IMG/VR virus record: IMGVR_UViG_3300000553_000004
Coordinates: 150,734 to 214,733 of that record
DNA length: 64,000 bases
Reading direction: 5' to 3' (one strand)
The notes under the pieces are model-generated. The model worked only from the letters and a program-made list of their open reading frames with translations, had not been told where the DNA came from and did not search any database. Shown here one piece after another: positions 5,988-62,713 of this stretch. Positions within the stretch are counted from its first letter, which is position 1. Every line of letters begins with the position of its first letter. A program made the position numbers and the translations under genes.

Positions 5988-7953
5988 TTATATAGAGTCA
6001 CGCTTGACTTATTTTAATCCTCTGATAGTATTGTTATATGAAACGGACTTCCACAAAAACCAAACCACAAAGAATGTCTGGCTTCATGTCGGTATTGCCG
6101 ACTCGACGAATCGTTCATGTCAAAATCATAAACATCAACAGCGGCGAATATCCATTCCAAGTTGTATTGGTGGAAGACGACAAAGTGGTAGCAGAAGATT
6201 TTGAATTTTTCTTCGTGGCAGACCCATCATTAGTTAAACTTTATCCGACCCGAGAATCTGCCGTTCACGGTGAACTTGAACGGTTACACGAAGAATACAG
6301 TAAAGAACGTCGGAAGTTGAGAATTCAACAGCAGAGATACAAGTGGGCATTACGTCAGGTTGAAGATTACAAACACTTCGACGAATTGCAAAATCCAATC
6401 TTTACACAATAAAATATGAAACCCGTTAAATTTGAATCATTTCACAAATCACACCAGCGAATTTTTGGAAGTAAACCCACCTTCCGAGAAATGGCATTAG
6501 GCGATGGAATTAACAGACACCAACGCCGTGTGATTAATACGGAGAATGTGAGTGAGGCGGTTATCACCAGAACCAAACCTACCAAATCTAAAAAGAAAAC
6601 TCTTTGTCCCCACTGCGCCACGACCAATTTGATTAAGGTGGATGCGTACAGCAATGAATGTACTAATTGTGGTTGGAATGAGTTGAGTTGATATGAATAT
6701 CAAAGTAATAAATCTTGTAGAATTTGAAGCCATCGTAAGGGCCAAATTGAAACACAATTGGGACAGAGACATCAAACAACATCAGACTTGTAATTTGATT
6801 GGATACTTGATGACGTCAGGCTTTCCTAAATTGGATGTCAACAACTTTGGTGTATTTCTCAAATCATTACAAGAATCAATCGTCATAGACTCCGTGGCCG
6901 TGGATTTGAATGATGCTACATATTACTATCTAATCAACGGAACTTCACAAGGATTAATCAAGAAATCCGATGTTCAGCCAGTGTGAAATCGTGAAGGCTT
7001 GACTTATTTCATAGGTCTGATAAATTAACTCCAATGAACGAAGAACCAACACCGACAAAAAACGTAGAAAAAGTGACGAACTTTCTATTTTATTACGATT
7101 GTATTCCAGAGACAAATGCAATTCGTCTTAAATTATTGAATTTGGCAGAAATTATTCAAATCAATAAATACGATTTTGTGTTTCAGATGCCTACCGTTCA
7201 CGTCATGGACACCACCAAAAATGTTAAACCGACTATCGAAAAGTATATTAATTGGAGAGGTAAAGAACGTGAACGGGAAGTGTATCCTAAACCTAAACCA
7301 TTCCCATACGCACATTATTTGGTATTTTCCTCACCATTAACAGAAAAAGAATTGGAATTTTGGAGAATTTTTAAATTGGGATATTTATCCCATCGATGCG
7401 GAGTTTATTTATGAAACCTATTAGTCAAAGAGTGGCCGAGAAATTGGAACGAGAAAGAAAGGAACGTATGAGACGTTCTACCGGAGAAAAACGGTATAAA
7501 TCTTTTAGTATTCCACTATACGGATACCCCTACATTGAGACTGAGGGTGATATTCTATTTCTAAAGATGCAGGCCAAGAAATTTGTCGATACGTGTGTAC
7601 ATTTCGCTCCATCTCAATTTTTGCAACTGGTGAAAGATGCCATTCACGAAAAAGAAGAGAACGAGATTACACGGAGAAACACTCCGCCGGTGCCGGAGGT
7701 GTTGTTGATGTCGCCCACTGTGTCGGCATACACAGAACCGACTGTAGCTCCACTGACAGAAGAACAGTTGAATGATTTATCTGAACTATCTGACGCATTA
7801 CGTTCTAATAGAAGTGTCCCCGAGACTCCTCTACCGTCTAGTGTACTACGAGCCACATCCAACTTAGGTGACTATTACACGAGTGCGGCAATCCATTACA
7901 CAGCCATAGGGTGAGAGGCTTGACTTGTTATAATACTGTGTTAGATTGTTGTT

Positions 7954-10350: not shown

Positions 10351-10647
10351 ATGAAAACCAACGCATTCAGTTTAATTGAAACATTGGTGGTAATCGCAAT
10401 CGTGATTTATCTCACATCGGCATTGTCGCTTTGGAACTATTTCCGAATTGTTCATGGCAGAGACGGTGCGTGGTCACACTCGACTCCAGACACGGCTGAT
10501 GTTTTTGTCACACTCATTCCGGTAGTCAATACAGCGTTCTCTTTTCTATTTTGGACGTCATCGCCTCGTAGAGATGGACGTGGGTTTTATTTGAATTTTA
10601 ATAAGATTAATAAAATAATCACAAAATTATTTTGTGTAAAGAAGTGA
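10351..10647 (+). CDS. membrane protein with pilin-like N-terminus
   Basis: MKTNAFSLIETLVVIAI matches class III signal peptide pattern (A/G-F-S/T-L-I-E). Confidence 0.7.
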   Translation: MKTNAFSLIETLVVIAIVIYLTSALSLWNYFRIVHGRDGAWSHSTPDTADVFVTLIPVVNTAFSFLFWTSSPRRDGRGFYLNFNKINKIITKLFCVKK

Positions 10648-12558
10648 AAACTTTAATATCATGACAATTACCAAAGATACAACTGTGACAGTGGTGGATG
10701 GAAACTTCAAAATATTGATGGGGCCTGCTCTAACCACCTTCTACGCCAAGGAAAACACAGGCAGTGAAAACTCAAAGTTTGTGTTACGAACCAACGGTGA
10801 GATTGACAGACTGATAACGATGTTACAGGCAGCTAAAGAGACGATGAAACTGATTATCGTCGCATCTTGAAATATGAACTTTATATTAACATACTTAATG
10901 GTTTTTTTAATCATCGCCGTCATTCTTACAATATCATTTGGCTTGGTCGTTGGTACAATCAGTGGAGTGATGTATTTAATTGCCCACAACCATCCAATTT
11001 GGGCAGTTTTGTTCGCCATAGCCGTTGTATCACTCATCACAACCACGGTAATTGGATTGATTTGGTGAAGCCAAGAAACAATTTGACGATGCTAAAAAAG
11101 AAGACTTAGATTCATTCGGCCATTCTTGGATACCTCAAAGACATACACCCAAGAACATATAACAATTAAATACACATGAAAATTCAAGTAACCATAAAGG
11201 GTAAGGAGATTAAAGTAGAATCTTCAATCTTGTCATACATGCTCACCGCTCACAGTCTCGGTCTTCGAGATTGGGTAGAGTCAGAAAAGAATGGATTTAT
11301 TAAAGGTTTAACCAACGGAGTTGACCGTGAGACAGCAGAAAGAAATCTTGGGTATTTGTATGATGCATTGGATACGATTGCAAGTCACCGAGATGCCAAC
11401 GATAAACTTAAAAAGATTTTGGATGAGGCGTGTAACACCGTTTCCGAAGCTTAGAAATACATTTAATATGAAAAAACGAGCCAGAGACATTAACATTGGT
11501 GATACAGTCAAATTTGAAGTGGTAACGGCGATTGAAATCACTCCGAGAGGTAAATACGTATTCAAATCGGAACGTTGTTATCAATCAGGCGGCATTATGG
11601 GAGCTGGTATCAATCCTGAACAGTGGGTTTCTTTAAATAATTTTGAATTCTTGGATGCTCTCGAAGGAACCGAAATTTCCAAAGGCGGTTATGATGAAGA
11701 ATATAATTCATACCTATACCGAATCTTTGAACATAAGGGTAAGTTCTATAAATTTGAATATGTCAATGGCGAAATGTACAAATCCTACGAAGTCAAAAAG
11801 ACAAGTTGGATGGAGTATAAATGTGATTGGGTAGAAGTATGAAAAAGAAATTCAGCGTGACAATGAACTGGCAAATCTTTATGTCACTCGCCATGGTAAC
11901 ATACAAAGATATTGAGGCTAAAGACGTGGAAGAAGCCAAGGAGATTGCCTTGAATCGATTCAATACATTACACAACTGGACAGAAGGATGGGTTCAACAA
12001 GTTGAAGAATTGTGACGCTTGACCAACGAACCATTTGTGGTAATATAACAACATGAAAACTTTATCGACAAAATACCACACTCTGAACGGCGGTATTCCT
12101 ACCAAGACGCCGGCCAATGTAGGTGAAAATAGTATAGGCATGGACACTGGCTGTCAACGGAATTGGTTGCATTTGTGGATTGGACATCACAGACCTGCCA
12201 CGAAAAAAGAAAAGAAAGATGGTATGGAAGATGACATTTGGGTATCCGAGTCTGTTCATTTGTCCCGTGAAGATGCTCAACACTTAGTTGATGAAATCAA
12301 TGAGCGGTTATTCTAAAATATATCATTTGGTTTTAGAAACCGCCGGTAAGACAAAATGAAAACTATAACAATACATGAGGGTTGAACGTATATACGTTTT
12401 TATGAATATTAAATGTGACATGACAGAGAAGGAATACGCCGCTTGGATTTGTAAAATGATTATGGATGAACTTGAGGAACGGACAGGGAAAAGATGGCCA
12501 CCACGTATAACCGTGAAAGAGGGCTTGACCAATGAAATAAATTTGGTAGGATAAAGGT

Positions 12559-21855: not shown

Positions 21856-22830
21856 GGCTTGATTTTTGGTAAACATCGTATAAATTAAACCTATGTTTGA
21901 TAGAATCCATTTGACCAGAACCGAACAGGCCGTTTCAGATTCGTTGGCTCATGCCCGAATTCAACAGGATTACATACATGACACGTTGAGGGTGGTACAT
22001 CACGGCAGTAATGATTGGGACGGTGACGTGGATATTAACATCTATGAAGAACACGTTGCCGATGCTGTAAAGGTCGTTGAAGACCACACTGGTACAAAGT
22101 GTACGTCAACGTTTTTGAAAATCGGTAAGAAAACTGGCCGAAGGATTTGGAAAATCACCGCAAAGGGATACATCAATGGTCCGTGTGGCCACTACGCCCG
22201 AGTTGAATGGGAAAAGAAAAATGGAAAGCCGTATCCGATGGAACTTGTGGTCGAGGCTTGACGGTAAACAAATAACTGTTAGTATAACAATACAAAATTT
22301 ATGCCATGTCGTTGTGATTATCCCGATACGTGTAACGAGGACCCAGGTCTTCGTGATTCCGCCAACAAATCCACCCGCGCAGCTTGTGACATGAGGACAA
22401 TCCTCCGTCGTCACAATCTCGAACTTGAATTGACGCTCGAGACTCGGAAGTGGATTAAGAAACACGATGACAAAGATGCCGCTCGCATCGCCGTGGAAAC
22501 TCGGAAAGGGTTGCGTCAACGTGTCAAACAAGCCGCACTCGACAAGCTGAGTCTCGAAGAGCGCCGTGTGTTGGGGTTGTGAGGTATGAATCGTTACACC
22601 GAGTTGACCTGTAAGTTTTGGCCCCATTACAATATCACGGCAGGCTTAACAAACCTTGCCTTTTGGTTGCCATCTGTTATATATTGGACACCGCCGGTAA
22701 TATTTCCAATTATAACATCGTCAATGGGAATGCTTTGTGTCTATTGGGGAATACAGGGAATTCTACATCATCGTCACCAGCGTAAACAACGCTTGACTAA
22801 AAGTAATCCGTTGGTATAGTTATTTGTGTC

Positions 22831-22916: not shown

Positions 22917-23015
22917 TGGCCTTTAGCTCAATGGCAGAGCAGAGCACTCACGCGGGCAGTTACGCCTGCATCGTTAATGCTTTGGTTGACAGTTCGAGTC
23001 TGTCAAGGCCAACCA
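22917..23015 (+). tRNA. tRNA (probably CAU, Ile2/Met) with 24-nt insertion in anticodon loop
   Basis: TGGCCTT/AAGGCCA acceptor, canonical D and T arms, 31-nt anticodon loop CTCA[24 nt]TAA. Confidence 0.75.
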
Positions 23016-31004: not shown

Positions 31005-33056
31005 ATTTTTGTTTTGTTGTTTGTTTTATTAACGACTTCAATTTATCACAGTAATCTATTTAGTCAAGCGGTCAGTCCCACCACATACGAGTCACATTGT
31101 CGAAGGGATATTTGTGTTCAATGTAATCACAATAATCGGCCCCACACACGTTTTTAACCTTGCCGGTGACATACATACAGACACTTAACTCACGAGCGAG
31201 GATGATTTTACAATCATCGGGGAGGGATTCCAACATGGACGGTGTGAATTCGTTGTATTCAGGACAAGCCTCTTCCATGATTCGGATTGCGGTCACTTTG
31301 TCCACGGGTGAGACAGCCCGAAAATCCAATTGACGAGTCTCTTCGTTGTAGGCAATCAGAACCGAACGGCGAACGGTTTCATTGATGAATTTTTGGTTAA
31401 TAATCATGACTTAAATTTATCAAATGTTTATTGTAAGTCAAGCCTCATACATCTACGCTTGACATTATGGTAATGTTTGATATTTTAACCACATGAATTT
31501 GAAGTCCACTATTACCGATGTTTGTTCCGCCATCCTCACTCAACATCTTGGGTCCATTGAAAACGTCGTGATTGATTCGGCCTGTAAGACTGTTATTACC
31601 GAGTGGAATACTCATCACACCGAACAGATTGACACTCGCCACGAACTCGCCGAGTGGAGTCGGACGATGGATGGTATCAGAACCGAACAGCTCGGATGTG
31701 GTAATTGTGAACATTGTTCATGTGGCGAATCCCATTAATTTTATGTCAGTACAATACATTGAAAACGAAATCGTTCATCTCAATGGTGAACTCGTAACCG
31801 TAGTCCGTCAATTCACTCAGACTCAGAGTGATTCATGGAACGGTCAACTATCCGTAATCAAGGTCGGTGAGAATCGGTATAAGTATCTCATCACTGCGAT
31901 GGATGGCAAGTCGACGTTATTTTCAATGTGTGATGTTCTCCGAGTCGAACCGTCTCTATCAGTCAGTGTGGGAACTTCCCAAATAATCCGACTGAAAGGT
32001 TCAATGTAATGTGTATTATTGTTTTATTCGCTCTATTAGGTTTACCGATAGGCGCAGTCGGTTTGTTCTGTCTCATCTACTTCTTCTTTTTCATGAGTCG
32101 GTGACGCTTGACATTAATTAAATGTTTGGTATTTTAATCACATGAATAACAATTTACTTTTACAGGCTCAGAAATGGTTGGCTACTATCGGCATCAAATC
32201 CGAAGCATGTCAGACCTTTCTCAAAGTCAGTCGCAAAGATGTCGACGACAGTGGCCTTTTCGAAACCGATTCATTTCTTCGTGAATTGAAACTTGGTATC
32301 GGTAGTAATAAACTCTATCTCGGATTGGATGATGTGGCGAACTATCACATCAAAGCATTCTAACCCCACACGGGGAGTGGGTACCCCCAGCGCATTACCT
32401 TTTTGGGACCCCCAGCGCTGTTTCACCCGCTACCCGCGCCTGAATACTGCGCTGGTGACGCTTGACAATTAAAACAAACAATGTAGTATTTCAATATGAA
32501 TGAATACATCGTCAATCTCACTTGGTCTGTAACCGGCTCGGTCAAGGTCAAGGCAAACTCACCCGAAGAAGCTGCCGAACTAGCTAAGGGCCCTACGGTT
32601 TCCTTGCCCGAATCCAATTATTATCTCGAAGATTCAATCACCTGTAACCCTGATGCCGACGTCCGGTTAATATCGTAATACTATGAAACAACTACTGACA
32701 TGGTTACGTAAACGTACACCGTCGTTTATTTGCGCAGTAATAGGTCACGGGCATCTTTCAACAGTCGAACCGTATCAAACGATATGGACATACAAAAATT
32801 ATAAGGGACTGACCGTAGAGGATTTAACGAAGACCGATAACGTATCCGAAGTATCAGTCCGCGGAAAGTTAAAATGTAAACGTTGTGGACAGATTTCCAT
32901 CGGTAACGTTAAATATAAAAACTATTGTTAGTTTAACGTTAAAGGACACCAATACACAATAAACCATATGGCGCCTAATAGGCGGTCATACATGCGCAGA
33001 ATTGTGGCGTACTTGAAGTATATTACCATTTTTTATCGCAACGTCAAGCGCCAGGA

Positions 33057-33132
33057 GTTAACGTTAAAGGAATTAACGCAGGCCTTGGTCCCACATTCTC
33101 GGCGCCTTTCGGTCGGCCTCATCATCTCTCAC
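33057..33132 (-). ncRNA. small RNA family C copy 2
   Basis: Promoter 33133-33168; GTGAGAGATGATGAGGCCGA…CGCCG…TGCGTT. Confidence 0.5.
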
Positions 33133-33345
33133 ATGAATAGTTTAACAAATAAGACCGAGAAGTCAAGCGGTGGGAAAACGTGTGAGTTTTATTGGCAAAG
33201 TTTGGATACGTCCAAACACAATCCAATGGTTCACTCACATGAATAGTTTAACAAATAAGACCGAGAAGTCAAGCGGTGGGAAAACGTGTGAGTTTTATTG
33301 GCAAAGTTTGGATACGTCCAAACACAATCCAATGGTTCACTCACA
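33128..33345. repeat. exact tandem duplication, 106-bp unit (promoter + hairpin RNA)
   Basis: ctcaca at 33128, 33234, 33340; identical units. Confidence 0.92.
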
Positions 33346-49978: not shown

Positions 49979-50370
49979 GGGCTCGTAATGGTTTCGACAT
50001 GATGTTGAAGATAAACGAAGCACGCCGAGGATGTTATCAGGACTCGTAAAAAGATAACAAAAACATAAATGCTAACCTTAACCGTTTGGCCAACCTCGAT
50101 TTTTCATTCTCGGTGAATGAAGTTGAGGTCGCAGTAGCTTAATAACTACTCCGTCGCACTGACCGACTTCCTCTAAGTTGGATGTGGCGTAAAATAGAGG
50201 AAGAACTGCTTGTAGTTTAAATTATAAGACTGATACGAAAGGCCAGTATGCCAATCTATGACATGTAGGTTGTTCATTACCGATAATGTCGAATTCACCA
50301 AAATGAAATAAGCGTGTAGCGTCGGTTGTTAGATATGTTATGGACGTTGGTTCAACTCCAACCGAGTCCA
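49979..50370 (+). ncRNA. ssrA: tmRNA
   Basis: 5' GGGCTCG…TTCGAC; tag ORF 50071-50142 ANLNRLANLDFSFSVNEVEVAVA*; 3' GGAC-GTTGG-TTCAACT-CCAAC-CGAGTCC-A with G3-U70. Confidence 0.92.
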
Positions 50371-51972: not shown

Positions 51973-52710
51973 ATGGAATTAAAAGAACTCATCAATGAAG
52001 CTAAATACGTCGTTGCATTTACAGGTGCGGGTCTGTCAACGGAGTCTGGTATTCCAGATTTCCGGTCAAGTAGCGGACTTTATTTAAGTGGAAAATACGA
52101 AGGATATACTCCTGAACACATCTTGAGTAATCGTTTCTTTCGTTCAAATAAAGAAATCTTCTTTTCATTCTACAAGGAAAGAATTATGGCGATGTCTGAC
52201 AAACAACCCAGCCGTGCGCATTTTGCATTGAAAAAGATGCAGGACGTTGGAAAGTTGAAATCGGTAATTAATCAAAACATTGACAATCTAATTCAAAAAG
52301 CTGGCACCACCAACGTTTTTGATTTACATGGAAATATTTCATCGTTCAGATGTGTCAGCGCTTGTGGTAAAGATTATACAGGCGAAGAATTCATGAAGAT
52401 GATGGAAGACAAGCCGGTTCCTCGTTGTGAATGTGGTGGAGTCGTAAGACCGAACACCGTTCTATTCGATGAATGGTTGAATGATGACATCTATGATGGT
52501 GCCTATCACGAAGCCAAGAAGGCTGATTTGATGATTGCAATTGGTTCATCGTTGGTCGTAAGACCAGCCTGCACATTGTTGTCAGAAATTGGCCCTGATT
52601 GTAAATTGGTAATTCTCAATAGGGATGAAACTCCCTATGACAAGAAAGCCACATTGATTCTTCGTGAACCGTGTGGTGAAGTGTTGGAGAATTTGGCAAA
52701 GGAATTATGA
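51973..52710 (+). CDS. cobB: Sir2/CobB NAD-dependent deacylase
   Basis: GAGLSTESGIPDFR, NQNID, LHG, CxxxC/CxC Zn site, GSSL. Confidence 0.93.
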   Translation: MELKELINEAKYVVAFTGAGLSTESGIPDFRSSSGLYLSGKYEGYTPEHILSNRFFRSNKEIFFSFYKERIMAMSDKQPSRAHFALKKMQDVGKLKSVINQNIDNLIQKAGTTNVFDLHGNISSFRCVSACGKDYTGEEFMKMMEDKPVPRCECGGVVRPNTVLFDEWLNDDIYDGAYHEAKKADLMIAIGSSLVVRPACTLLSEIGPDCKLVILNRDETPYDKKATLILREPCGEVLENLAKEL

Positions 52711-52879
52711 ACAGTAGTGAATATAAAACTCCCGATAGCATATTCACTTTTGGTGAAATAGGTGATTTCTATAAAGAAACTTGGATTGATGCCGAAACTC
52801 ATTTGAGAAGTTTTGATAACAGAACATTCCATTTGGAAAAGGTTGTTCAGTTTCTTGAGAATAGTAAAAAATACGTTAT

Positions 52880-53263
52880 ATGAATCCTCTGGCTCAAAAA
52901 TGGGATAAGACAGGTCTGTTAGATGGAATGACAGACTTTAGAAAAAATGGATGTGCAGTGATTCTGGAAGATGTTGCTAGAATATTAATTGAAACAACTC
53001 CTAAAGAAAATAAAGAACGGTCAAGACATGAACATTTTTGTGGTTACATATTGCCTATGGTTAAAGTAGGGTATAATTTGTTATATCCACAAAAATTTCC
53101 TGATGTTGTTGTCTTTGTAAAAGACTTTGAGGAATTTTTTAATAAAAATGAATCAGTGACCGAAGTTTTAAAATCATCCTCAAATGAGGATGTAGATGTA
53201 TTTTGTGAATTGTATGAACCGTATTTTATCAAAACGTTTATGAAACTTAGAATGGCAGAATGA
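52880..53263 (+). CDS. protein resembling N-terminus of gp23-type major capsid protein
   Basis: LAQKWDKTGLLDG…AVILED.A..L…ILPMV. Confidence 0.5.
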   Translation: MNPLAQKWDKTGLLDGMTDFRKNGCAVILEDVARILIETTPKENKERSRHEHFCGYILPMVKVGYNLLYPQKFPDVVVFVKDFEEFFNKNESVTEVLKSSSNEDVDVFCELYEPYFIKTFMKLRMAE

Positions 53264-53264
53264 T

Positions 53265-54008
53265 ATGAACGCATTTGTAAAAACAACCAATGGTAAGTTT
53301 CCCAATCCAAACTTTTGTTATGCTTGGAAGGGGCTTACCGAACTGCAATACAATGTAATTACATTTGAAGACGCCGACTTACAAGACCCGTCTTTCTGGA
53401 TGAGTTGCAATAGAACCACGCCGGTTTTTGCCGGCGTAATTGTATTCGATGAAATCTTGGAGAAATTAGGGGTCGATTACAAAAAGATTGACACCTATCC
53501 TACCATCCTACGTTCATATCTCAATCGTTATGTCGAGAAAACCACACTTGGAGAGTATAGAAAAGTGTGGGACAAAGATGAAGATAATCGTCCTCTTATG
53601 TTCATGAAACCCATTAAACAGAAACAGTTTAACGGTAGAGTCATGAAAAGTATTCTTGATTGGATTTGTATGACTAAATTTGCCGATGATACGGAAGTTT
53701 ACATTTCCGAGCCTGTTAATTTTCTCACCGAGTATAGAGTCTATATTCGTAATGGTAAAATTCTACTTGGAAGAAACTATCGCGGTGATTGGACAAAAGG
53801 CATAGACATTAATGTGGTTAAAGATGCAGTGGAAACATTTGCAGATGAAGCCCCTTGCGCTTATGCTTTGGACTTTGGGTTGACTGATGATGGTAAAACA
53901 TCCTTGGTAGAATTCAATGATGCAACCAGTCTTGGAAATTATGGATTGGATGCTGTAAACTTCGCTGATATGATTGTCAGTAGATGGGTTGAGATTTGTA
54001 ATCCATGA
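53265..54008 (+). CDS. ATP-grasp (R2K-like) protein
   Basis: FMKP..QKQFNG, SEPV.F.TEYRVY, YALDFG, LVEFND. Confidence 0.8.
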   Translation: MNAFVKTTNGKFPNPNFCYAWKGLTELQYNVITFEDADLQDPSFWMSCNRTTPVFAGVIVFDEILEKLGVDYKKIDTYPTILRSYLNRYVEKTTLGEYRKVWDKDEDNRPLMFMKPIKQKQFNGRVMKSILDWICMTKFADDTEVYISEPVNFLTEYRVYIRNGKILLGRNYRGDWTKGIDINVVKDAVETFADEAPCAYALDFGLTDDGKTSLVEFNDATSLGNYGLDAVNFADMIVSRWVEICNP

Positions 54009-54258
54009 ACGATACAAAGCCACAATGTTCTGTCTGTAACTGGACCGATTACGAAGGTGATTGGGGAGGTTGTAGATGGATTAGAGGGTTTAGAACTGTA
54101 TGTCCTGAATGTAAAAGACATTTTAGTGGATGTCATGATGCTCCAATATTGAGTGACCCACATCCATTTTTGGCTCACCGATTTAAAAGAAGAAATAGTT
54201 GGTGGTCAAAATTTAAAAAGAAATTCTTGGATGTTATAGACATGCTAGGATATTATCC

Positions 54259-54732
54259 ATGAAATATAAATTAATTAATAAGACTAAGATTTCTACAAAT
54301 GTTCTTAAAACGTTGATAGAGTTGGCTGCTCCAAAAGGAATTGATGAAGTCGACATTTCAATAAAATATGATTATTCTGGAGAGTCGGCTTGGCATGCAG
54401 TGGCATATGCATTTAAGAAAAAGAAATCCATTAATTTGTGGATAATGGATGGAGATTTAAACCTACCTAAATATAGTAACCCGTCTGCCTTAAAAAAGGT
54501 CGGTTATAGTCCCAGATTTTTAATTAAAAACCAAAATGAAGTATTAGTATCTCTGCTAGCTCATGAACTTAGGCACATATGGCAAGGAAATGTCAGTAAA
54601 CAGAATTTCTTAAAAAGTAAATTACACTATTACAAATCTTGGGATGGACTGACATATTCTAGCGTATATAAAATGGAATTAGATGCATGTAAATATGCAA
54701 AAAAAATATTAGACAAATATAGAAAATTATGA
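54259..54732 (+). CDS. putative zincin metallopeptidase
   Basis: LAHELRHIWQ…E.DA. Confidence 0.65.
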   Translation: MKYKLINKTKISTNVLKTLIELAAPKGIDEVDISIKYDYSGESAWHAVAYAFKKKKSINLWIMDGDLNLPKYSNPSALKKVGYSPRFLIKNQNEVLVSLLAHELRHIWQGNVSKQNFLKSKLHYYKSWDGLTYSSVYKMELDACKYAKKILDKYRKL

Positions 54733-55335
54733 TGTGTTTCGCATTTTATTTACAAATTGTAGAACTTCTTCTTTTGAATAATCATGTTTCGCAAAGTTTA
54801 TTCCTTGACAAACAAACTCTGCATTTCCTTTGATATATCCTTTTGATGAATCAATTCTATCTAAACTTGCCTTTTCTATTGAACGACATTTTCTAAAACT
54901 TAATTTGCTTTCTGGAAGTATCATTTTAATACCAGTATAAGGACATTTGCCGTTTTGAAATTCCCACAATTCTTTTAGAAAGTCTATATCTATATTAGAT
55001 TCCCACGAACCTCGATTCTTACTTTTATCTACAAAATATCCAAATGGAGATTTTCCTGTTTTATGTATATCATAACAAGATTTATTACAATAATGAATTC
55101 CTTTATTTTCTCTATGACGTGATGTGTATTTTCCACGTTTCATTTCAAATTCTTTACCGCATCCATTACATTTCACCTTTATCATTGTGATTGGTCTAAA
55201 ATAATTTAATTTACAAGTTCCACTACAAAAATGTCGTCCATTTCTCTCTTTTAGAGTATTTAAAAATACTTTACGAGATTTTTCAAATTGCTTATTACAT
55301 ACCATACAATTAACACTTATTATTTGATTTTTCAT
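54727..55335 (-). CDS. Zn-finger + HNH-like homing endonuclease (paralogue of 50392)
   Basis: CPYTG…ASLDRIDSSKGY. Confidence 0.8.
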   Translation of the reverse strand: MKNQIISVNCMVCNKQFEKSRKVFLNTLKERNGRHFCSGTCKLNYFRPITMIKVKCNGCGKEFEMKRGKYTSRHRENKGIHYCNKSCYDIHKTGKSPFGYFVDKSKNRGSWESNIDIDFLKELWEFQNGKCPYTGIKMILPESKLSFRKCRSIEKASLDRIDSSKGYIKGNAEFVCQGINFAKHDYSKEEVLQFVNKMRNTS

Positions 55336-55456
55336 AATAATTTTTTAAATTTTTCTTTCTTATTTGTTTTTTATTTCGTCGGTAATACCGCATTGATTTT
55401 TTGCAATTCGCTTGACGTTTTTCTTCTTCTGTGTTATATTTTTTATGTCTTCCCAT
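55310..55456 (-). CDS. small basic endonuclease-associated protein
   Basis: MGRHKKYNTEEEKRQANCKKSMRYYRRNKKQIRKKNLKNYYEKSNNKC. Confidence 0.65.
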   Translation of the reverse strand: MGRHKKYNTEEEKRQANCKKSMRYYRRNKKQIRKKNLKNYYEKSNNKC

Positions 55457-55513
55457 ATACAATAAATAGTGAAATGGAAAGAAAAAGTAATAAAAAAGTA
55501 ATAAAATAATTTT

Positions 55514-56380
55514 ATGTTAGGTGCTATTATCGGCGATATAGTAGGCTCTCCGTATGAAGGGTCTTCTTTAAATTGGGTGGATGATAAATCATTCCCTCTA
55601 TTTGCAAATGAACTTTCGAGATTCACAGACGACACAATCTTGACCTGCGCTACCGCAGACGCATTATTGAAAATCAGTGATAATAGATGTGATGATAACA
55701 CAGAGTCGTTGATGTCAATGGATAAGATATTTGCCGAGAAATACATAGAATGGAATTTAAAATATCCTGGTCGTGGATATGGAAGTGGATTTCAACAGTG
55801 GGTTGATAACGGTGGAATCGACATAAATCCAAGTTATGCAAATGGATGTATGATGCGTTGTAGTCCAATACCGTTATTTTATATAGATTCATATATGGCA
55901 AGATATACGGCATATGATAGTATTAAAATGACACATAATTCTCCTGAATCGCATCGAGGCGTATGTTCAATCGTGTCTGCTATTCATATGGCTTTACAAG
56001 GTTCTACCAAACTTCAAATCAAAGCTTATGTAGAAGAACAATTCGGTCATATGTTAGATTTAACGGTAGAACAATGGAGAGAACATCCTAAGACTTCGAT
56101 TAGGTGTAATCTCTCAGCTCCACAATCATTAGTATGTTTTATGGAATCTACTGATTATGAATCTACCATCAGAAATGCCGTTTATACTAAAGGTGATACT
56201 GATACTACTGCTGCAATTGCCGGTTCTATTGCAGAAGCTTTCTACGGAGTTAAGTCGATTCCACAAGAGATGATTGATGGAGCTAAATCGAGAATGACGC
56301 CTGAGATGATAGAATTGGTAAATAAATATTATTCAATAATTGGGGAACGTAGAGAACAATATAAAGGATTTAAAATATGA
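55514..56380 (+). CDS. ADP-ribosylglycohydrolase (DraG/ARH family)
   Basis: GAIIGD..GS.YE, FTDDT, NG.MMR, GDTDTTAAIAG. Confidence 0.92.
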   Translation: MLGAIIGDIVGSPYEGSSLNWVDDKSFPLFANELSRFTDDTILTCATADALLKISDNRCDDNTESLMSMDKIFAEKYIEWNLKYPGRGYGSGFQQWVDNGGIDINPSYANGCMMRCSPIPLFYIDSYMARYTAYDSIKMTHNSPESHRGVCSIVSAIHMALQGSTKLQIKAYVEEQFGHMLDLTVEQWREHPKTSIRCNLSAPQSLVCFMESTDYESTIRNAVYTKGDTDTTAAIAGSIAEAFYGVKSIPQEMIDGAKSRMTPEMIELVNKYYSIIGERREQYKGFKI

Positions 56381-56913
56381 AATATGTAAAAACATTAACA
56401 TTAATAACATTCACGTCGTTATTAACTGCAACCGCAGCCCCATCAACCAATCTTTTATCATCTACAAAAAGTGATATAGGACTTTGGGCATTTTCATTTA
56501 GTGGCAAAGGCAATTCAACTCTAAACAATACTCATACGAATAACAATTCCACGGTCGGTGTAGAATTTCAAATTGGTTATAATACCAAACTTATTCTTCC
56601 TACGGAAGTCGGAGTTCGTCAGTCAATTGGATATTCAAATTCAAAAGTAGAATCTTGGAATTTATCGACTAAAGTATATTCCGATTGGAATGTTATTAGA
56701 GTTGGTAATCTAGAAACGGATGCCGGAGCAAATTTCGGCGTATCGTATGGAAGTCAAGTTGGTGATTGGAGTATTTCTCCTGAAATTATCGGTAGACTTT
56801 ATTTAAAGAAGGATGTAGATTTATTTTGTAGAATTGAATATCCATACGACCTCACCTATGGTTCCTTTCAGAACAATTTAGCGTATAATTTTGGATTGCG
56901 ATTGCGGTTTTAG
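56377..56913 (+). CDS. outer-membrane beta-barrel-like protein
   Basis: Signal peptide, amphipathic strands, C-terminal YNFGLRLRF. Confidence 0.7.
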   Translation: MKYVKTLTLITFTSLLTATAAPSTNLLSSTKSDIGLWAFSFSGKGNSTLNNTHTNNNSTVGVEFQIGYNTKLILPTEVGVRQSIGYSNSKVESWNLSTKVYSDWNVIRVGNLETDAGANFGVSYGSQVGDWSISPEIIGRLYLKKDVDLFCRIEYPYDLTYGSFQNNLAYNFGLRLRF

Positions 56914-57067
56914 AAGTTCAAAAACGGTTACAATTAAAATTAAATAAGAGTTGACTTTTTCACTAACTCTGATATAGTTATTTACATGAAGAACAAACAA
57001 ACATAGGTTACTACAAACGACGATAACATCGCCTTCGTAATTTCTTTGTCTTCATATCTTCCTTTAT

Positions 57068-57143
57068 ATCCCATTAACTCAGCGGCCAGAGTGATGCTCT
57101 CTAAAAGCTTTCGTCATCGGTTCGAATCCGATATGGGATACCA
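57068..57143 (+). tRNA. amber suppressor tRNA (CUA)
   Basis: 76-nt cloverleaf, loop CT-CTA-AA with CTA at 57101-57103 (positions 34-36), CCA encoded. Confidence 0.85.
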
Positions 57144-57154
57144 ATTTTCTTTAC

Positions 57155-57209
57155 GGTCGAGATATACATTCAGTGTGTTCTTTTGGCTCAAGACCAAACT
57201 CGACCACCA
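57155..57209 (+). ncRNA. 55-nt tRNA-like RNA lacking anticodon arm
   Basis: GGTCGAG/CTCGACC-A-CCA, one small hairpin, TTTGG-CTCAAGA-CCAAA T-like arm. Confidence 0.65.
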
Positions 57210-57216
57210 TTTTAAC

Positions 57217-57294
57217 GGTCTGATAGCTCAATTGGCAGAGCGCTGGGAGGATAAAACCGACCGGAGGTTAGAGGTTCAAGTCCTTTTCAGACCA
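57217..57294 (+). tRNA. tRNA-like gene with aberrant extended anticodon arm
   Basis: Canonical acceptor, D, T arms; anticodon arm CTGG-GA-GG-ATAAAA-CC-GA-CCGG. Confidence 0.65.
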
Positions 57295-57361
57295 CTTTTT
57301 AAATATTAATAGAATACGAACTTGACGTTTTCGAATTTTGTGTTATAGTTATTGACAGTAA

Positions 57362-57446
57362 GCGAGTGTGATGTAATTGGCAGCCATCCGAGTCTTAGAA
57401 ATTCGGGGAGAAATCCGTGTAGGTTCAAATCCTATCACTCGTACCA
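57362..57446 (+). tRNA. tRNA-Leu(UAG)
   Basis: CT-TAG-AA loop, long variable arm, CCA. Confidence 0.9.
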
Positions 57447-57452
57447 ATTTAC

Positions 57453-57528
57453 GGGGTCTTAGCTCATCTGGTAGAGCGTCTGATTTGCATTCAGAAGGTG
57501 GCGAGTTCGAGTCTCGCAGGCTCCACCA
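57453..57528 (+). tRNA. tRNA-Ala(UGC)
   Basis: G3-U70, TT-TGC-AT loop, CCA. Confidence 0.93.
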
Positions 57529-57650
57529 AATTTTGGTGATTTAATAAAATCATCTGGTGGAATGGACAGTTTAACTGCTCCCAGTTTGTCGGTGTCGAAT
57601 AACCGACTATTTTCATAGGAAGTTTCAATAAATTCTTCATATTTATACGC

Positions 57651-58055
57651 ATGGAACACATTAAATCAAAACGTCCATTTGTAAAAATCTGCGCATATTG
57701 TCAGGGCATAAATAAACCACAGATGTCGAATTTCTCCACGGGTATAGATTCTAAAGTTAAAGATGAGATGAAACAGGTTGATGCTCAAGTAAAATCCAAA
57801 TCCGATGAATTAACATTTAGTCATGGAATTTGTGAACCACATTTAATACAAACATTACAAGAAATTCCTGGAATGACAAAAGAACGTATTAATTCTATGG
57901 TCAGTAAATTGACTGACTCGGCGCCGTGTTTATTAAATAATGACCAACTCCGACATTCTTACATGCGTGGTATATTTACGCCAGAACAGGTGAAACAGGT
58001 CCAACAATCAAATCAACATTTGACGGAACGATTTAAAAAACTTGCCGGAATCTAA
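57651..58055 (+). CDS. hypothetical protein
   Basis: CAYC, SHGICEPH, C-terminal RFKKLAGI; upstream ATATTTATA. Confidence 0.7.
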   Translation: MEHIKSKRPFVKICAYCQGINKPQMSNFSTGIDSKVKDEMKQVDAQVKSKSDELTFSHGICEPHLIQTLQEIPGMTKERINSMVSKLTDSAPCLLNNDQLRHSYMRGIFTPEQVKQVQQSNQHLTERFKKLAGI

Positions 58056-58277
58056 TCCTGAGTTATAATACAGTCCATGTTCACTAATGAATTGTCAGGA
58101 TTGTTTATCCCACTTATTATATATGGAATAATTGTAGGCATACTTTTATGTGGAGTTGGCGCCGGTGGATGTGTATTAATCCATCATTACAAAATTTCCA
58201 TAGAAGAACGTCAATCCAATGCCGTGATAGTAACAAACGTAGTATACGTTACAAATTCAATTTCAAAATAATTTAAT

Positions 58278-58574
58278 ATGTCACTAAAAATGGAACAATG
58301 TGTATTTTGTAAATTAACCACGTTAACCCGTGGACATCATATTATCCCAAAATGCAAATCAGGTACAACCATCGTACAGACATGCGAGAGTTGTGAATCA
58401 TTTATTCATTCCACTTGGACGCACAATGAATTAAGAGACGTCTATAATACAGTAGAAAGTATAATTGAAAACGAAAAGTTTGAAAAATTCTTAAAGTGGA
58501 GATGGAAACAGCCTGTGACCACAGTATTCAAATCTACTCTCGGTAAATCCAGAGATAAAAATAAATATCATTGA
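58278..58574 (+). CDS. small HNH endonuclease
   Basis: CVFC…HHIIPK…CESC..FIH. Confidence 0.75.
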   Translation: MSLKMEQCVFCKLTTLTRGHHIIPKCKSGTTIVQTCESCESFIHSTWTHNELRDVYNTVESIIENEKFEKFLKWRWKQPVTTVFKSTLGKSRDKNKYH

Positions 58575-58587
58575 ATATGGACACAAT

Positions 58588-59448
58588 TTAATATATTAAT
58601 TTCCATCCTTTCGTTTGTTTAATTTTATTTTTAATAAGTAACCATACACAACTATGATGTAAATCATATTTTATTCTAAAATCAAAACGAGTTCCTGTAA
58701 ATACTTCGCCTGTATATTGATTTTTAAAAGTATATATAGTTTTGTTATATTGAGAATGATTGTGACCAGAGCATTTATTTTTAATTTTATCTATAACACA
58801 TTGAAGACGTTTCTTTCCTTTCCATATAGATGAGAGACTAGATTTTGTTTGGTTTGAATGATGTTTTCCTAAAAATGGAGGATTGAGTTTATTATTTTTT
58901 ATCAATTGATTTAGATGGGGTATTGAATGAATTCTGCCTTTGTTGCTATTACTTATTTTCTTTTTTATTTCATCGGTCATATCTACTCTATCAGAGATAA
59001 ATGATATATTATAGCATTTACTTCTTTCTGTTTTAGCCATATCCAAATATTTTTGTTCTGTGTCTTTTAGTGTTTTGAAGTTTGCTGTTGTTTGCTCTAT
59101 TATTAGAAAATTAAAATTATTTTTACCGTGTTTATTCCACGAATTTTGAAGATAATTATTTTTGTGGTTGTTTTTATTTAAATGATAAATATGATTACTT
59201 CGTCTTTTATGAAAATTTTTTGTTGAACCAATATAATACTTACCATTAATTTTATTTATTATCTTGTAAATTCCGCTTACCTTTGTGGTATCGTTCGAGA
59301 TTTTCTTTTTTAATTCTTCTTTTGTGTCGGTTATAATACCGCATACGTCTAATTCTCCACTGCTCTCGGATTTCATCTGTGGTTCTATTAAGTTTTTTTC
59401 TCCCCATATAACATTTTCTTTTTTGATTGTTGACATTTCTCCGTTCAT
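58588..59448 (-). CDS. GIY-YIG homing endonuclease
   Basis: SGIYKIINKINGKYYIGS; NUMOD3-like repeats; start uncertain. Confidence 0.88.
   Translation of the reverse strand: MNGEMSTIKKENVIWGEKNLIEPQMKSESSGELDVCGIITDTKEELKKKISNDTTKVSGIYKIINKINGKYYIGSTKNFHKRRSNHIYHLNKNNHKNNYLQNSWNKHGKNNFNFLIIEQTTANFKTLKDTEQKYLDMAKTERSKCYNISFISDRVDMTDEIKKKISNSNKGRIHSIPHLNQLIKNNKLNPPFLGKHHSNQTKSSLSSIWKGKKRLQCVIDKIKNKCSGHNHSQYNKTIYTFKNQYTGEVFTGTRFDFRIKYDLHHSCVWLLIKNKIKQTKGWKLIY
59252..59407 (-). CDS. small basic endonuclease-associated protein (overlapping)
   Basis: MGRKKLNRTTDEIREQWRIRRMRYYNRHKRRIKKENLERYHKGKRNLQDNK. Confidence 0.65.
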   Translation of the reverse strand: MGRKKLNRTTDEIREQWRIRRMRYYNRHKRRIKKENLERYHKGKRNLQDNK

Positions 59449-59504: not shown

Positions 59505-59810
59505 ATGGAAAAATCTTATTGTTATATACTTCAAACTATAGAAAATACGTTATATTGCGGATGGACGCTTGATTTAGATAGACGAGTTATAGAACACAAT
59601 TCCCCAGATAGTAAAACAAAACATACAAGAATTCGTCAACCAGTAAAATTGGTTTATTTTGAAGAATTTGATACGAGGGCAAAAGCGGCCCAACGAGAAT
59701 GTCAAATAAAACGATTATCAAGAAAACAAAAAATCGAATTAATTAAACTAAAATATCCAGAATTTACTATTCCTAATTTTGTTAAGAAACCACCATTTAT
59801 AAAAATATGA
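59505..59810 (+). CDS. small GIY-YIG nuclease (UPF0213/YhbQ-like)
   Basis: YCYIL…LYCGWT.DL.RR..EHN…PVKLVYFE…A.QRE..IKRLSR. Confidence 0.85.
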   Translation: MEKSYCYILQTIENTLYCGWTLDLDRRVIEHNSPDSKTKHTRIRQPVKLVYFEEFDTRAKAAQRECQIKRLSRKQKIELIKLKYPEFTIPNFVKKPPFIKI

Positions 59811-60721
59811 CATTACGAGAAAGATATAGAGGCGCCATGTTAGGTTTGGCGGTTGGAGATGCGTTGGGCGTTCCAGCAGAATTTCAAGAACGAGGAACAT
59901 TTCCAAAGATTACTGAAATGATTGGCGGTGGCCCATTTCGTTTAAATCCTGGCGAGTGGACGGATGACACGACTATGGCATTATGTTTGGCAAATAGTTT
60001 GCTTGAAACAAATGAATTCAATGCAAAAGACCAAATGGATAAATACTGGCGATGGGTAGAGGATGGATATATGTCAAGTAATGGTAAAATGTTTGACATT
60101 GGAGATACTACATCAGAAGCACTTTGTAGATACAGAAAAACTGGCAATCCAATGGCAGGCAGCGACGACCCAAAATCTGCTGGTAATGGTTCTATAATGA
60201 GACTGGCACCAATACCACTTTTCTTTAAGGAAGATGACCAAGGATATCTTTTGACGGCAGCAAGATTAAGTTCAAAAACCACACATGGAGCCAAAACCTG
60301 TATTGATTCTTGTGTTTTATTATCTCTAGCAATTTATTTTGCTTTGAGAGAATTTCCTAAAGAACATTTGTTAAATATATTTACAGAACCGCCGCCATAT
60401 ACATCACCGGAGGTAATAGACATAGCAAAGGGTTCTTATAAAACCAAAACCGAAGACCAAATCAAATCAACGGGATACGTCATCCATACTCTTGAGGCGG
60501 CTTTGTGGTGTTTTCATAATACCGATACATTCGAGGATGGTTTGATAAAGGCGGTCAATCTTGGTCATGATTCAGATACCACAGGCGCCGTATATGGTCA
60601 ACTGGCAGGCGCTTATTACGGAGTTCAGGCGATTCCCCAAAGATGGCTTGACAAGATAGTGAAACGTGATATTATAATAACCGTCGCAGATAATCTGTTC
60701 GACAATAGACCATGCAATTAA
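59807..60721 (+). CDS. ADP-ribosylglycohydrolase (DraG/ARH family)
   Basis: GLAVGDALG, WTDDT, AGNGSIMR, DSDTTGAV.GQLAG. Confidence 0.94.
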   Translation: MTLRERYRGAMLGLAVGDALGVPAEFQERGTFPKITEMIGGGPFRLNPGEWTDDTTMALCLANSLLETNEFNAKDQMDKYWRWVEDGYMSSNGKMFDIGDTTSEALCRYRKTGNPMAGSDDPKSAGNGSIMRLAPIPLFFKEDDQGYLLTAARLSSKTTHGAKTCIDSCVLLSLAIYFALREFPKEHLLNIFTEPPPYTSPEVIDIAKGSYKTKTEDQIKSTGYVIHTLEAALWCFHNTDTFEDGLIKAVNLGHDSDTTGAVYGQLAGAYYGVQAIPQRWLDKIVKRDIIITVADNLFDNRPCN

Positions 60722-61073: not shown

Positions 61074-61874
61074 ATGAAAACGACGGAATTATTATGTAAT
61101 AAATGTGGAAAATCGTTTTTGATGATAGTAAAATACTATAATCAAAAAATTAAAAATGGTCAAAAAGAATTTTATTGTAGTAGAAATTGTTTTATTGATA
61201 ATGTAAAAAGAAAACCAATAAAGAAAATTTGTTTATATTGTCATAAAGAATTTGATTCGACGACATTTAAAGACGCTAAAAACTGTTGTTCTAATGTTTG
61301 TTCTTCAAGATATTCTCAATCATTTGTAAATAAAGATAACATTTCAAAATCTATGAAAAGATTTTGGAAAAACAATCCACAATTACATAAAAAAACAATT
61401 CCGGTTTTGTGTATTTTTTGTAAAGCCGAATTTATTCCAAATGGACAAGAAAAGTGTTGTAGTATAGAATGCAGAAAAAACAAAATGAGATTAAATGGGT
61501 TACTTTCTGTCCAAGTTCAAAAAGAAAATAGACGTAGTAAAAATGAAATTTATTTCGCTGAATTGTGTAAAAAACATTTTCAAAACGTAGAATTTAATAT
61601 ACCAAAATTTAATGGGTGGGATTGTGATGTAATTCTCAATGACCAAAAAGTTGCGGTTATGTGGAATGGTAAATGGCACTATGAGAAGATTACAAGAAAA
61701 CATTCGGTCAATCAAGTTCAAAATAGAGACAAGATAAAATTGAATGAAATCATTAAATGTGGATACACTCCATATGTAATAAAAGACCTTGGAAGAGAAG
61801 ATAATGTGTTTGTAGAATCTGAATTTAAAAAGTTTACAAAATTTTTGTTGACAGATTGTAAAAATGGTATATAG
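61074..61874 (+). CDS. Zn-finger + Vsr/DUF559-like endonuclease (probable homing endonuclease)
   Basis: Repeated CxxC/YCS modules; SKNE…DVIL…WNGKWHY…RDKIK. Confidence 0.7.
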   Translation: MKTTELLCNKCGKSFLMIVKYYNQKIKNGQKEFYCSRNCFIDNVKRKPIKKICLYCHKEFDSTTFKDAKNCCSNVCSSRYSQSFVNKDNISKSMKRFWKNNPQLHKKTIPVLCIFCKAEFIPNGQEKCCSIECRKNKMRLNGLLSVQVQKENRRSKNEIYFAELCKKHFQNVEFNIPKFNGWDCDVILNDQKVAVMWNGKWHYEKITRKHSVNQVQNRDKIKLNEIIKCGYTPYVIKDLGREDNVFVESEFKKFTKFLLTDCKNGI

Positions 61875-62517: not shown

Positions 62518-62565
62518 AAATTTATATACGCTTGACAAAAAGTTTTGTTCGTGTATAGTTATTAA

Positions 62566-62630
62566 TGTTCGGTAGTTTAACGGAAGAACACTTAATCACA
62601 GTGATGTTGGCTCTAATCCAACTCGAACAA
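62566..62630 (+). ncRNA. tRNA-like RNA with truncated anticodon arm
   Basis: TGTTCGG/TCGAACA, D arm, 3-bp anticodon stem, GTTGG-CTCTAAT-CCAAC; own promoter at 62530. Confidence 0.5.
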
Positions 62631-62638
62631 GAATTTAT

Positions 62639-62713
62639 GGTGGGAAAGCCAAACGGTCAGGCAAGACTCTGCAAAAGTCTTTTTAGTTAGTTCGACTCTA
62701 ACTCTCACCTCCA
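62639..62713 (+). tRNA. tRNA-Cys(GCA)
   Basis: AGACT-CTGCAAA-AGTCT, U73, CCA. Confidence 0.9.

Follow-up and report, generated by a model that had tools for sequence, protein, structure and literature searches.

We analyzed a stretch of 64,000 nt (hereafter the window) that forms the final 64 kb of the 214,733-bp viral record IMGVR_UViG_3300000553_000004 (identical to TBL_comb47_HYPODRAFT_10000011), which was sampled from the hypolimnion of Trout Bog Lake, a freshwater bog, and which is marked as that of a T4-like phage by its gene content. One operon of the window is headed by a gene for a predicted amber-suppressor tRNA, tRNA(CUA), and is preceded by a six-codon leader open reading frame (ORF) ending in TAG, the codon that this tRNA would read; behind the TAG, the frame stays open to the end of the operon. 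The best-supported reading of this arrangement, whose core an earlier note on this DNA had already put forward, is that ribosomes passing the leader UAG cross the pre-tRNA operon and thereby couple it to amber suppression; the basis for this reading is the leaders of related phages together with the open frame behind them. We consider it quite probable that the UAG is a translated sensor and that ribosomes transit the operon. It also seems reasonably likely that the operon is tRNA precursor and mRNA at once, the leader UAG gauging the operon's own suppressor and read-through setting the output of suppressor and tRNA-like RNAs. The full statement, which includes a negative sign of the feedback, is put forward only tentatively, and the sign is a guess.

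The positions that the earlier note had given for promoter, mini-ORF and RNA genes all proved correct when the sequence was rechecked, and a frame of 100 codons past the TAG, through three RNAs, to a TAA at 57309 was confirmed (Table 1). The UAG is codon 7 of the same frame that holds the tRNA(CUA) gene. Because the read-through frame ends 13 nt ahead of the −35 element of the next promoter, it covers exactly one transcription unit. The TTGAC-16-TATAGT(TAT) design of the promoter is common to other tRNA operon promoters of the window (at 22794, 57322, 61848 and 62532). These other tRNA promoters are followed by leaders of just ~5–11 nt without an ORF, and the leader of the suppressor operon measures 82 nt; within the window, such a leader is special to this operon. 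With an ATG so close to the −10 element, the predicted mRNA would be leaderless or nearly so. An ATG 6 nt past the −10 element of the promoter at 62532 was considered as a second leader; it opens a 41-codon frame with no resemblance to the leader and was judged to be a chance occurrence.

Table 1. Features of the suppressor operon and its boundaries in the window
Feature	Position	Strand	Remarks
Predicted sigma-70-like promoter	56951..56978	+	TTGACT 56951-56956, 16-nt spacer, TATAGT 56973-56978, then TAT; score 10/12; kept in relatives
Leader mini-ORF, MKNKQT	56986..57006	+	ATG AAG AAC AAA CAA ACA TAG; ATG 7 nt past -10
Putative sensor codon UAG and conserved 3' context GTT	57004..57009	+	TAG in 23/23 sequences
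Read-through frame	57007..57309	+	100 sense codons, TAA at 57307-57309; spans all three RNA genes of the operon
Leader hairpin	57017..57038	+	Predicted fold; begins 10 nt past UAG
Pyrimidine-rich strand pairing with AUG region 56986-56997	57045..57055	+	Predicted fold
Amber-suppressor tRNA (predicted)	57068..57143	+	Anticodon CUA 57101-57103, class I, A73, CCA encoded; ARAGORN; Rfam RF00005 57.5 bits vs threshold 29
Mini-tRNA-like RNA, 55 nt	57155..57209	+	7-bp acceptor stem, short hairpin with UUCAG loop, T arm, A73, CCA
tRNA-like gene, non-canonical anticodon arm	57217..57295	+	ARAGORN 'Phe AAA'; Rfam 52.5 bits, 14-nt insert; no encoded CCA; T run after
Next promoter, end of suppressor operon	57322..57349	+	Drives tRNA-Leu(UAG), tRNA-Ala(UGC)

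Leader and suppressor tRNA in related phages

Relatives were gathered without reference to the leader, by means of a neighbouring protein and by means of a tRNA-body pattern. The protein, 178 aa long and encoded upstream of the operon (56377–56910), has homologues of 178–193 aa at 42–61% identity. This route fetched seven lineages, five of which carry the leader and a tRNA(CUA) heading a tRNA cluster at the same place (L036, L039, L087, L088 and L089); as for the other two, L035 is without the operon and one contig was too short to judge. The tRNA-body pattern found 33 distinct loci in IMG/VR and the JGI/ENA metagenomes, and leader and tRNA(CUA) were present in 18 of them. Pooling both routes gave 23 distinct leader sequences. 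In L035, −35 element and spacer are kept and the sequence diverges inside the −10 element (10630–10660); this lineage, which has the most similar neighbouring protein, has lost the operon, and the suppressor operon is thus dispensable or mobile.

Single-protein scans of IMG/VR with two neighbouring genes, as well as a scan with the exact tRNA pattern, returned the same phage only. A looser suppressor-tRNA (Sup-tRNA) pattern recovered ~25 unrelated Sup-tRNA families from IMG/VR, with the leader only in L017; the unrelated phage Sup-tRNA families sit behind other tRNAs or genes. The leader element is thus specific to this T4-like phage family and not general to phage Sup-tRNAs. When the post-TAG piece of L039 served as a protein query, just three called ORFs and no further lineages came up; gene callers mostly skip the frame. 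Distant blastn of positions 56300–58300 against GenBank phages gave generic tRNA-Ala matches only and no cultured relative, and the tRNA-body pattern had zero copies in 185,579 bacterial and archaeal genomes, hence no host clue. A marine Sup-tRNA of similar body on a TARA Oceans contig (L047) has, ~75 nt upstream, an ORF that starts with an in-frame ATG, has 14 sense codons in all and ends in TAG-ATT, with a frame that stays open for only 36 codons; the leader and this upstream ORF may be distantly related, or the latter may be a decayed form.

Conservation of the ATG..TAG and of the open frame upstream of Sup-tRNAs in related phages was the check that the earlier note had proposed, and its outcome was strongly positive. 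All 23 leaders comprise a sigma-70-like promoter, an ATG 7–10 nt past the −10 element, 6, 7 or 17 sense codons with Thr as the last, a TAG and a purine; the triplet after the TAG is GTT in 22 sequences and ATT in one. The encoded peptides include MKNKQT, MKNIFT, MKNNFT, MKNNYT, MNKAST, MKNIFNT, MKNNFTT and MNNMTPT, and the long class ends in LVKIGGCSPT. Every length change is a multiple of three, and at least four independent events are represented (6 to 7 codons in three ways, and the 17-codon class). The Thr codon before the TAG is spelt ACA, ACG or ACT, and Lys is spelt AAG or AAA. The two long-class leaders differ at four places within their last 10 codons; each of these differences is synonymous and falls on a third position, and they preserve no hairpin. 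The start context of the leader, with no Shine-Dalgarno sequence and an A-rich second codon, is the norm for genes of this phage, as Shine-Dalgarno motifs are rare in the window (11/134 crude gene calls) and AAA is the commonest second codon. These in-frame indels, synonymous changes and start context point to a translated ORF, more than an RNA motif.

The leader stop is TAG in 23 of 23 sequences, whereas TAG ends only 6–9% of genes in these phages. We looked for leaders in which stop codon and anticodon of the first tRNA had jointly changed and found none, all leaders combining TAG with CUA. A purine after UAG is said, from work of Bossi and of Miller and Albertini in 1983, to favour amber suppression in E. 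coli. The tRNA that would read this codon is itself conserved: in 13 lineages, 13 of its 20 pairs covary and the anticodon loop (CUCUAAA, 7 nt, with U33 before CUA) is invariant, including in four lineages found only via the neighbouring protein. The tRNA(CUA) is in all likelihood maintained by selection as a folded tRNA. In the family it belongs to class I and carries A or G at position 73, and these phages have no closely related paralogue of it that is not a suppressor.

The stop-free frame behind the leader

We then compared the length of the frame behind the TAG with that of frames in other tRNA clusters. The frame is open for 88–232 codons in 13 of the 14 lineages with enough sequence; in the fourteenth, a second TAG follows after 43 codons and the frame then runs on to 167. 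Summed over lineages, the read-through frame contains no stop in 2002 codons, compared with 95 and 107 stops in the other two frames. When each of the three frames was read from a start fixed 60 nt upstream of tRNA clusters without the leader, the mean was 17.7 open codons and the maximum 85, so that none of the 48 frames reached 88. In a second null, which took 96 frames of unrelated tRNAs that were already open across the tRNA, 10 run for at least 88 codons. Stop-free runs of 50–110 codons also occur in other tRNA clusters.

In the window alone, the 100-codon open run exceeds chance only weakly; across the phage family it clearly does so, and the relatives indicate that it is under selection. 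The possibility that a short ATG..TAG and a 100-codon run arose in relatively G+C-rich tRNA DNA and have no function is consistent with the second null and with the long runs elsewhere, by which the run is not extreme within the window. It is contradicted by the 23 distinct sequences, by the variety of operon architectures among them (at least eight) and by the fixed-start null, and its probability seems to us next to negligible.

This variety is considerable. The content of the operon behind the suppressor varies among lineages and comprises one or two mini-tRNAs, a second tRNA(CUA), tRNAs with an 8-nt anticodon loop and, in some lineages, a tRNA with a ~95-nt D-loop insert or several hundred bases of other RNA. 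Because the content differs so widely, the open frame does not result from shared ancestry alone. In L061, the frame runs for 164 codons to a single TGA at the boundary of an HNH insert, and 169 more open codons follow in the same frame. The window has a 2-nt deletion before the tRNA, which is read there in another frame than in the closest relatives, yet the frame is open to the operon end. The T stem of the mini-tRNA in the window is altered on both strands where relatives would have a TAA in the window's frame. The only frame that is never used across the tRNA is closed by U8-A9-G10 and by a TAA from the anticodon loop. A TGA inside the −35 element of the next promoter closes the read-through frame in L087 and L088.

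The residues that read-through would add are not conserved between lineages except where the tRNA sequence dictates them, and the lineages read the tRNA in different frames. In the first of these residues, the earlier note had seen an echo of ssrA tags; that resemblance did not survive comparison, as the residues are not conserved as protein, track an RNA hairpin and are unlike the tag of the phage's own transfer-messenger RNA (tmRNA).

A proposed ribosome-read sensor and its alternatives

The leader RNA has predicted folds that involve the ORF. The leader hairpin begins 9–14 nt past the UAG in the family, and all five of its pairs change on both sides in an alignment of 15 sequences. A partner strand of the AUG region is located 10–20 nt before the tRNA; ~85% of its cells are paired and two pairs covary, with AUGAAGA/UCUUCAU in the window, AGAAUGA/UCAUUCU in most lineages and GUAAUGA/UCAUUAC in L036. 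Eight leaders were folded independently, and each time the AUG (in the long class, the UAG region) was in the closing stem. No intrinsic terminator was found on the + strand from 56986 to 57068, and no U run follows the conserved hairpin. A search of Rfam at permissive E-values with positions 56900–57650 returned only tRNAs and chance-level matches, with no family for the leader or the mini-tRNA and no T-box.

Such folds raise the possibility of an RNA-only element, namely a structured 5' domain for processing, stability or folding of the precursor, such as a processing stem or a shield of the 5' end, in which ATG, TAG and open frame are by-products of constraints on the RNA and of common descent and no ribosome takes part. 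The covariation of the hairpin, the pairing of the AUG and UAG regions, the strong nucleotide conservation around the TAG, including the GTT, and the missing Shine-Dalgarno site would all suit such a domain. However, most genes of this phage have no Shine-Dalgarno site, and the RNA-only explanation leaves unaccounted for the in-frame indels, the synonymous substitutions and the exclusive use of TAG. It also does not explain why 2002 codons are stop-free across rearranged operons, where the other frames have ~5% stops, or why the frame ends at the operon boundary. We therefore regard it as improbable.

Because the leader contains a translatable mini-ORF, because its stop is always the codon that matches the operon's own tRNA, and because a stop-free frame extends to the operon end, we favor a ribosome-read sensor. 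Transcription would start only a few bases ahead of the ATG, so that the nearly leaderless AUG could be loaded with a ribosome co-transcriptionally. After six codons it would meet the UAG, where release factor 1 would compete with charged tRNA(CUA). If release wins, the ribosome would leave, the AUG region would pair with the downstream pyrimidine-rich strand and initiation would be shut off; the pre-tRNAs could then fold and be processed, and suppressor tRNA would be made. If suppression wins, the ribosome would go on in the stop-free frame to the operon end and melt the anti-AUG stem, so that further ribosomes could load on the opened AUG and the nascent tRNA and tRNA-like RNAs would be unfolded. 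The read-through transcript would act as mRNA and the yield of mature suppressor would drop, a negative feedback that would hold suppression at a set level. Negative feedback is favored only slightly over positive feedback, which agrees with the sequence almost equally well.

Several observations weigh against the ribosome-read sensor. The nucleotides of the mini-ORF are highly conserved, including some third positions and the GTT after the TAG, which means that constraints at the RNA level act too and could account for part of the conservation. Once the leader has folded, its AUG is paired, and translation would be hindered unless it takes place while the RNA is being transcribed. The long-leader class (L056 and L069) has no anti-AUG strand after the TAG, so that this part of the mechanism is not universal. 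Feedback on the suppressor tRNA alone would not need a frame that is open beyond that tRNA. Moreover, the passage of one ribosome would do no more than postpone tRNA folding, and a strong negative effect would require repeated loading, which we assume. The start of transcription, the use of the AUG by ribosomes, the charging of the tRNA and read-through itself are deductions from the sequence.

The same sensor could operate with the opposite sign through translation-coupled anti-termination, in which a read-through ribosome shields transcription and so gives positive feedback or a commitment switch. Release at the UAG would then expose a G-poor, pyrimidine-rich stretch, and Rho or another uncoupling-dependent process would halt transcription within the operon; suppression would switch on its own operon, or at least the downstream tRNA-like RNAs. 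A stop-free frame that reaches exactly the operon end is what coupling of ribosome and polymerase would require, and a near-leaderless AUG that is later sequestered suits a single pioneer ribosome. The last 30 nt before the tRNA are indeed G-poor in the lineages checked, with 6–13 C against 0–3 G, except in L056 with 6 G. When translation is blocked in T4, its delayed-early transcription becomes subject to Rho polarity. An engineered analogue is also available in the 'Uaa transcriptional switch', in which a UAG placed in the tna or trp leader makes downstream transcription suppression-dependent by unmasking a Rho utilization (rut) site (PMC6412442). On the other hand, the G-poor stretch is short as a candidate rut site (~30–60 nt) and is partly paired with the AUG region, and the suppressor tRNA starts 12–63 nt past the UAG, so that its transcription would probably precede any action of Rho. 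The other tRNA operons of the phage need no translation, and the anti-termination model presumes a Rho factor in the host. In our view, the anti-termination version is somewhat less likely than negative feedback.

Elsewhere TAG works as a stop, as the earlier note had held. It is the terminator in 8 of the 134 crude gene calls of the window and in 25 of the 279 from related loci, and the gene of the 178-aa protein (56377–56913) terminates at a TAG at the length of its homologues. The accompanying suggestion of an intermediate towards TAG recoding found no such backing: we detected no convincing in-frame TAG in conserved genes in ~94 kb of the phage (the 64-kb window and ~30 kb upstream) or in the loci of relatives, a scan that covers early and auxiliary regions, with structural and lysis genes outside it. 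Stop-to-stop frames with an internal TAG in the window and in relatives were examined as recoded genes and look non-coding. An ORF pair split by a TAG (32683–33246) has no family matches and is most simply two small genes.

These data also bear on the possibility that the phage is TAG-recoded (code 15) and the frame one of its ordinary protein genes, overlapping tRNAs by chance, or that the product of the frame is a functional protein whose synthesis depends on suppression. In some contigs, parts of the frame were picked up by gene callers as ORFs of 102–125 aa, and a suppressor tRNA is present. However, the read-through peptide is unconserved outside the segments forced by the tRNA, which the lineages pass in different frames, and neither the absence of in-frame TAG from the other genes scanned nor the use of TAG to end genes at homologue length is in keeping with recoding. 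We judge a protein gene to be highly unlikely.

In its working, the proposed element resembles leader-peptide attenuators and the autoregulation of release factor 2, and it is a member of neither. Attenuators of the trp, his, leu, thr and pheA type in enterobacteria likewise have a tiny 5' ORF with codons matched to the operon product, a transcript fate set by tRNA supply, and leader RNA pairings that involve the ORF. In the present family, the short 5' ORF is kept as an ORF in all 23 sequences, and the putative regulatory codon matches the operon product in every lineage (leader UAG, first-gene anticodon CUA). The differences are that the sensed codon is a stop, that the product is the tRNA itself and not a biosynthetic enzyme, that there is no terminator/antiterminator pair with a U run, and that the signal would be read-through into a long open frame and not stalling. 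In prfB, which encodes release factor 2, a factor that acts on one stop codon likewise sets its own production by way of that codon, an in-frame UGA early in the gene, and competition at that stop decides. However, prfB escapes by a +1 frameshift with an internal Shine-Dalgarno sequence and yields a protein of the same frame, whereas escape here would be by tRNA suppression and the product is RNA within the translated frame. A search of the leader for a prfB-type slippery +1 site with an upstream Shine-Dalgarno-like stimulator revealed no such motif, and the open frame stays in the zero frame.

Two further systems invite comparison. In tnaC/Rho-dependent attenuation and in the Uaa switch, events at a leader stop codon decide the exposure of RNA just downstream, and in the latter the input is amber suppression of a leader UAG. 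The element proposed here would be a natural one, has no Trp-sensing nascent peptide, and has downstream tRNAs that include the UAG-reading suppressor, which would close the loop. T-box riboswitches also carry a leader RNA codon that matches a specific tRNA and regulate genes of the pathway of that tRNA. Unlike the present leader, they bind tRNA without ribosomes and have a Stem I, a specifier loop and a T-box sequence; the ATG and the stop-free frame here point to ribosomes.

Acquisition of suppressors by standard-code phages has been proposed as a step towards recoding (Borges et al., bioRxiv 10.1101/2021.08.26.457843; Peters et al., PMC9523058). The suppressor-bearing and TAG-recoded phages of that work share with the present phage a phage-borne tRNA(CUA) and rare TAG stops, and differ from this T4-like bog phage, in which the 94 kb examined showed no in-frame TAG. 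Neither publication describes a leader ORF or a self-sensing element. More generally, our full-text searches of the literature turned up no natural stop-codon leader before a suppressor tRNA and no leader ORF reading into tRNA genes.

The common view is that suppressor tRNAs of phages drive the recoding of stop codons and set the timing of late genes, and an uncontrolled suppressor is toxic. We know of nothing that has been established about how phages control the level of a suppressor tRNA. If the proposed sensor is real, no tRNA operon controlled by a leader ORF and no natural sensor of stop-codon suppression by a tRNA would precede it, and it would extend ribosome-mediated attenuation to tRNA genes and stop codons. 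It might serve as a control device for code switching in phages and as a sensor of the genetic-code state of the cell. It would further imply that tRNA genes can be selected for translatability. As a natural counterpart of engineered UAG-leader switches, it could provide a compact part for genetic-code-expansion circuits.

Companion RNAs and genomic context

The family is rich in odd translation RNAs, including 55-nt mini-tRNAs, tRNAs with 8-nt anticodon loops and a phage tmRNA. The fold of the mini-tRNA-like RNA in the window has a z score of −3.2, and none of 200 shuffles was as stable. We collected 15 distinct copies, each exactly 55 nt long, in which 93% of cells are paired and 11 of 18 pairs covary. 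Besides the window, the RNA occurs in L017, L036, L039, L048, L050, L053, L057, L065, L082, L087 and L089, with two copies at some loci. Its acceptor stem starts with GGU and is followed by a 5–6-bp hairpin; A or G is found at position 73, CCA is encoded, and neither a D arm nor an anticodon arm is present. The covariation and constant length argue that this anticodon-less RNA is a real RNA family. A second kind of small RNA was seen in L036 (10474–10532) and L087 (~7800–7855), with an acceptor-like stem that ends in ACCA and surrounds two short hairpins, and with no T loop.

The T4 tRNA gene cluster yields tRNAs and co-transcribed small stable tRNA-like RNAs (species 1 and 2, or RNA C and D) from one precursor, and the present operon likewise mixes tRNAs with small tRNA-like RNAs in a T4-type phage. 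The 55-nt mini-tRNA is much smaller than the T4 small RNAs and has another architecture. Wild-type T4 has, to our knowledge, no amber suppressor and no leader mini-ORF.

The third RNA gene of the operon has homologues in relatives, and their anticodon arms differ. Such tRNAs with non-canonical anticodon arms, which share the suppressor's read-through frame, were observed in the window (57217–57295), in L039 (10396–10474 and 10668–10744) and in L065, L082, L063 and L089. ARAGORN reads 8-nt anticodon loops in them, among others CCUUAAAA, CCUAAAAA and UGUAAAAA (called 'ttaa', 'taaa' and 'aa'). These tRNAs could be four-base or stop-related decoders, or non-decoders. Other unusual tRNA genes include those with an insert of ~95 nt in the D loop (L036, ~10515–10700; L039, ~10484–10650) and a 96-nt tRNA of the window (22917–23012) that was found by Rfam and missed by ARAGORN and that has extra sequence near the anticodon arm. 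Four tRNAs with the Leu anticodon CAG have a short variable arm (L039, 12559–12636; L036, 11624–11701; L061, 7320; L082, 4525), and this class I shape is not a shape of bacterial tRNA-Leu. Between a strong promoter and tRNA-Cys, positions 62532–62640 of the window hold a degenerate tRNA-like sequence with recognisable acceptor, D and T arms and a truncated anticodon arm, which was called by no tool.

The tmRNA gene of the window (49979–50370, + strand; Rfam 131 bits) specifies a tag ending in VAVA. A phage tmRNA is present in all relatives examined, 6–8 kb upstream of the suppressor operon. It is a speculation that this tmRNA could rescue ribosomes left on stop-less fragments of processed precursor. 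Altogether, ARAGORN called 13 tRNAs and one tmRNA in the window, and Rfam added one further tRNA.

The window has a G+C content of 40%. Directly upstream of it lie rIIB, two RNA ligase families and an FtsH-like protease; the window itself contains many small early-type genes, GIY-YIG and HNH homing endonucleases, Sir2, R2K ATP-grasp and two ADP-ribosylglycohydrolases. Identical copies occur on shorter contigs. Sir2, R2K ATP-grasp and the ADP-ribosylglycohydrolases form an NAD/ADP-ribose-type cluster (51973–56380 and 59807–60721) that adjoins the tRNA operons and is syntenic in relatives. Homing endonuclease genes (HNH and GIY-YIG) have been inserted repeatedly in and around the tRNA operons, at 54727–55335, 58588–59448 and 61074–61874 in the window and at 2144–2518 (− strand) in L061, where the HNH gene lies antisense within the read-through frame.

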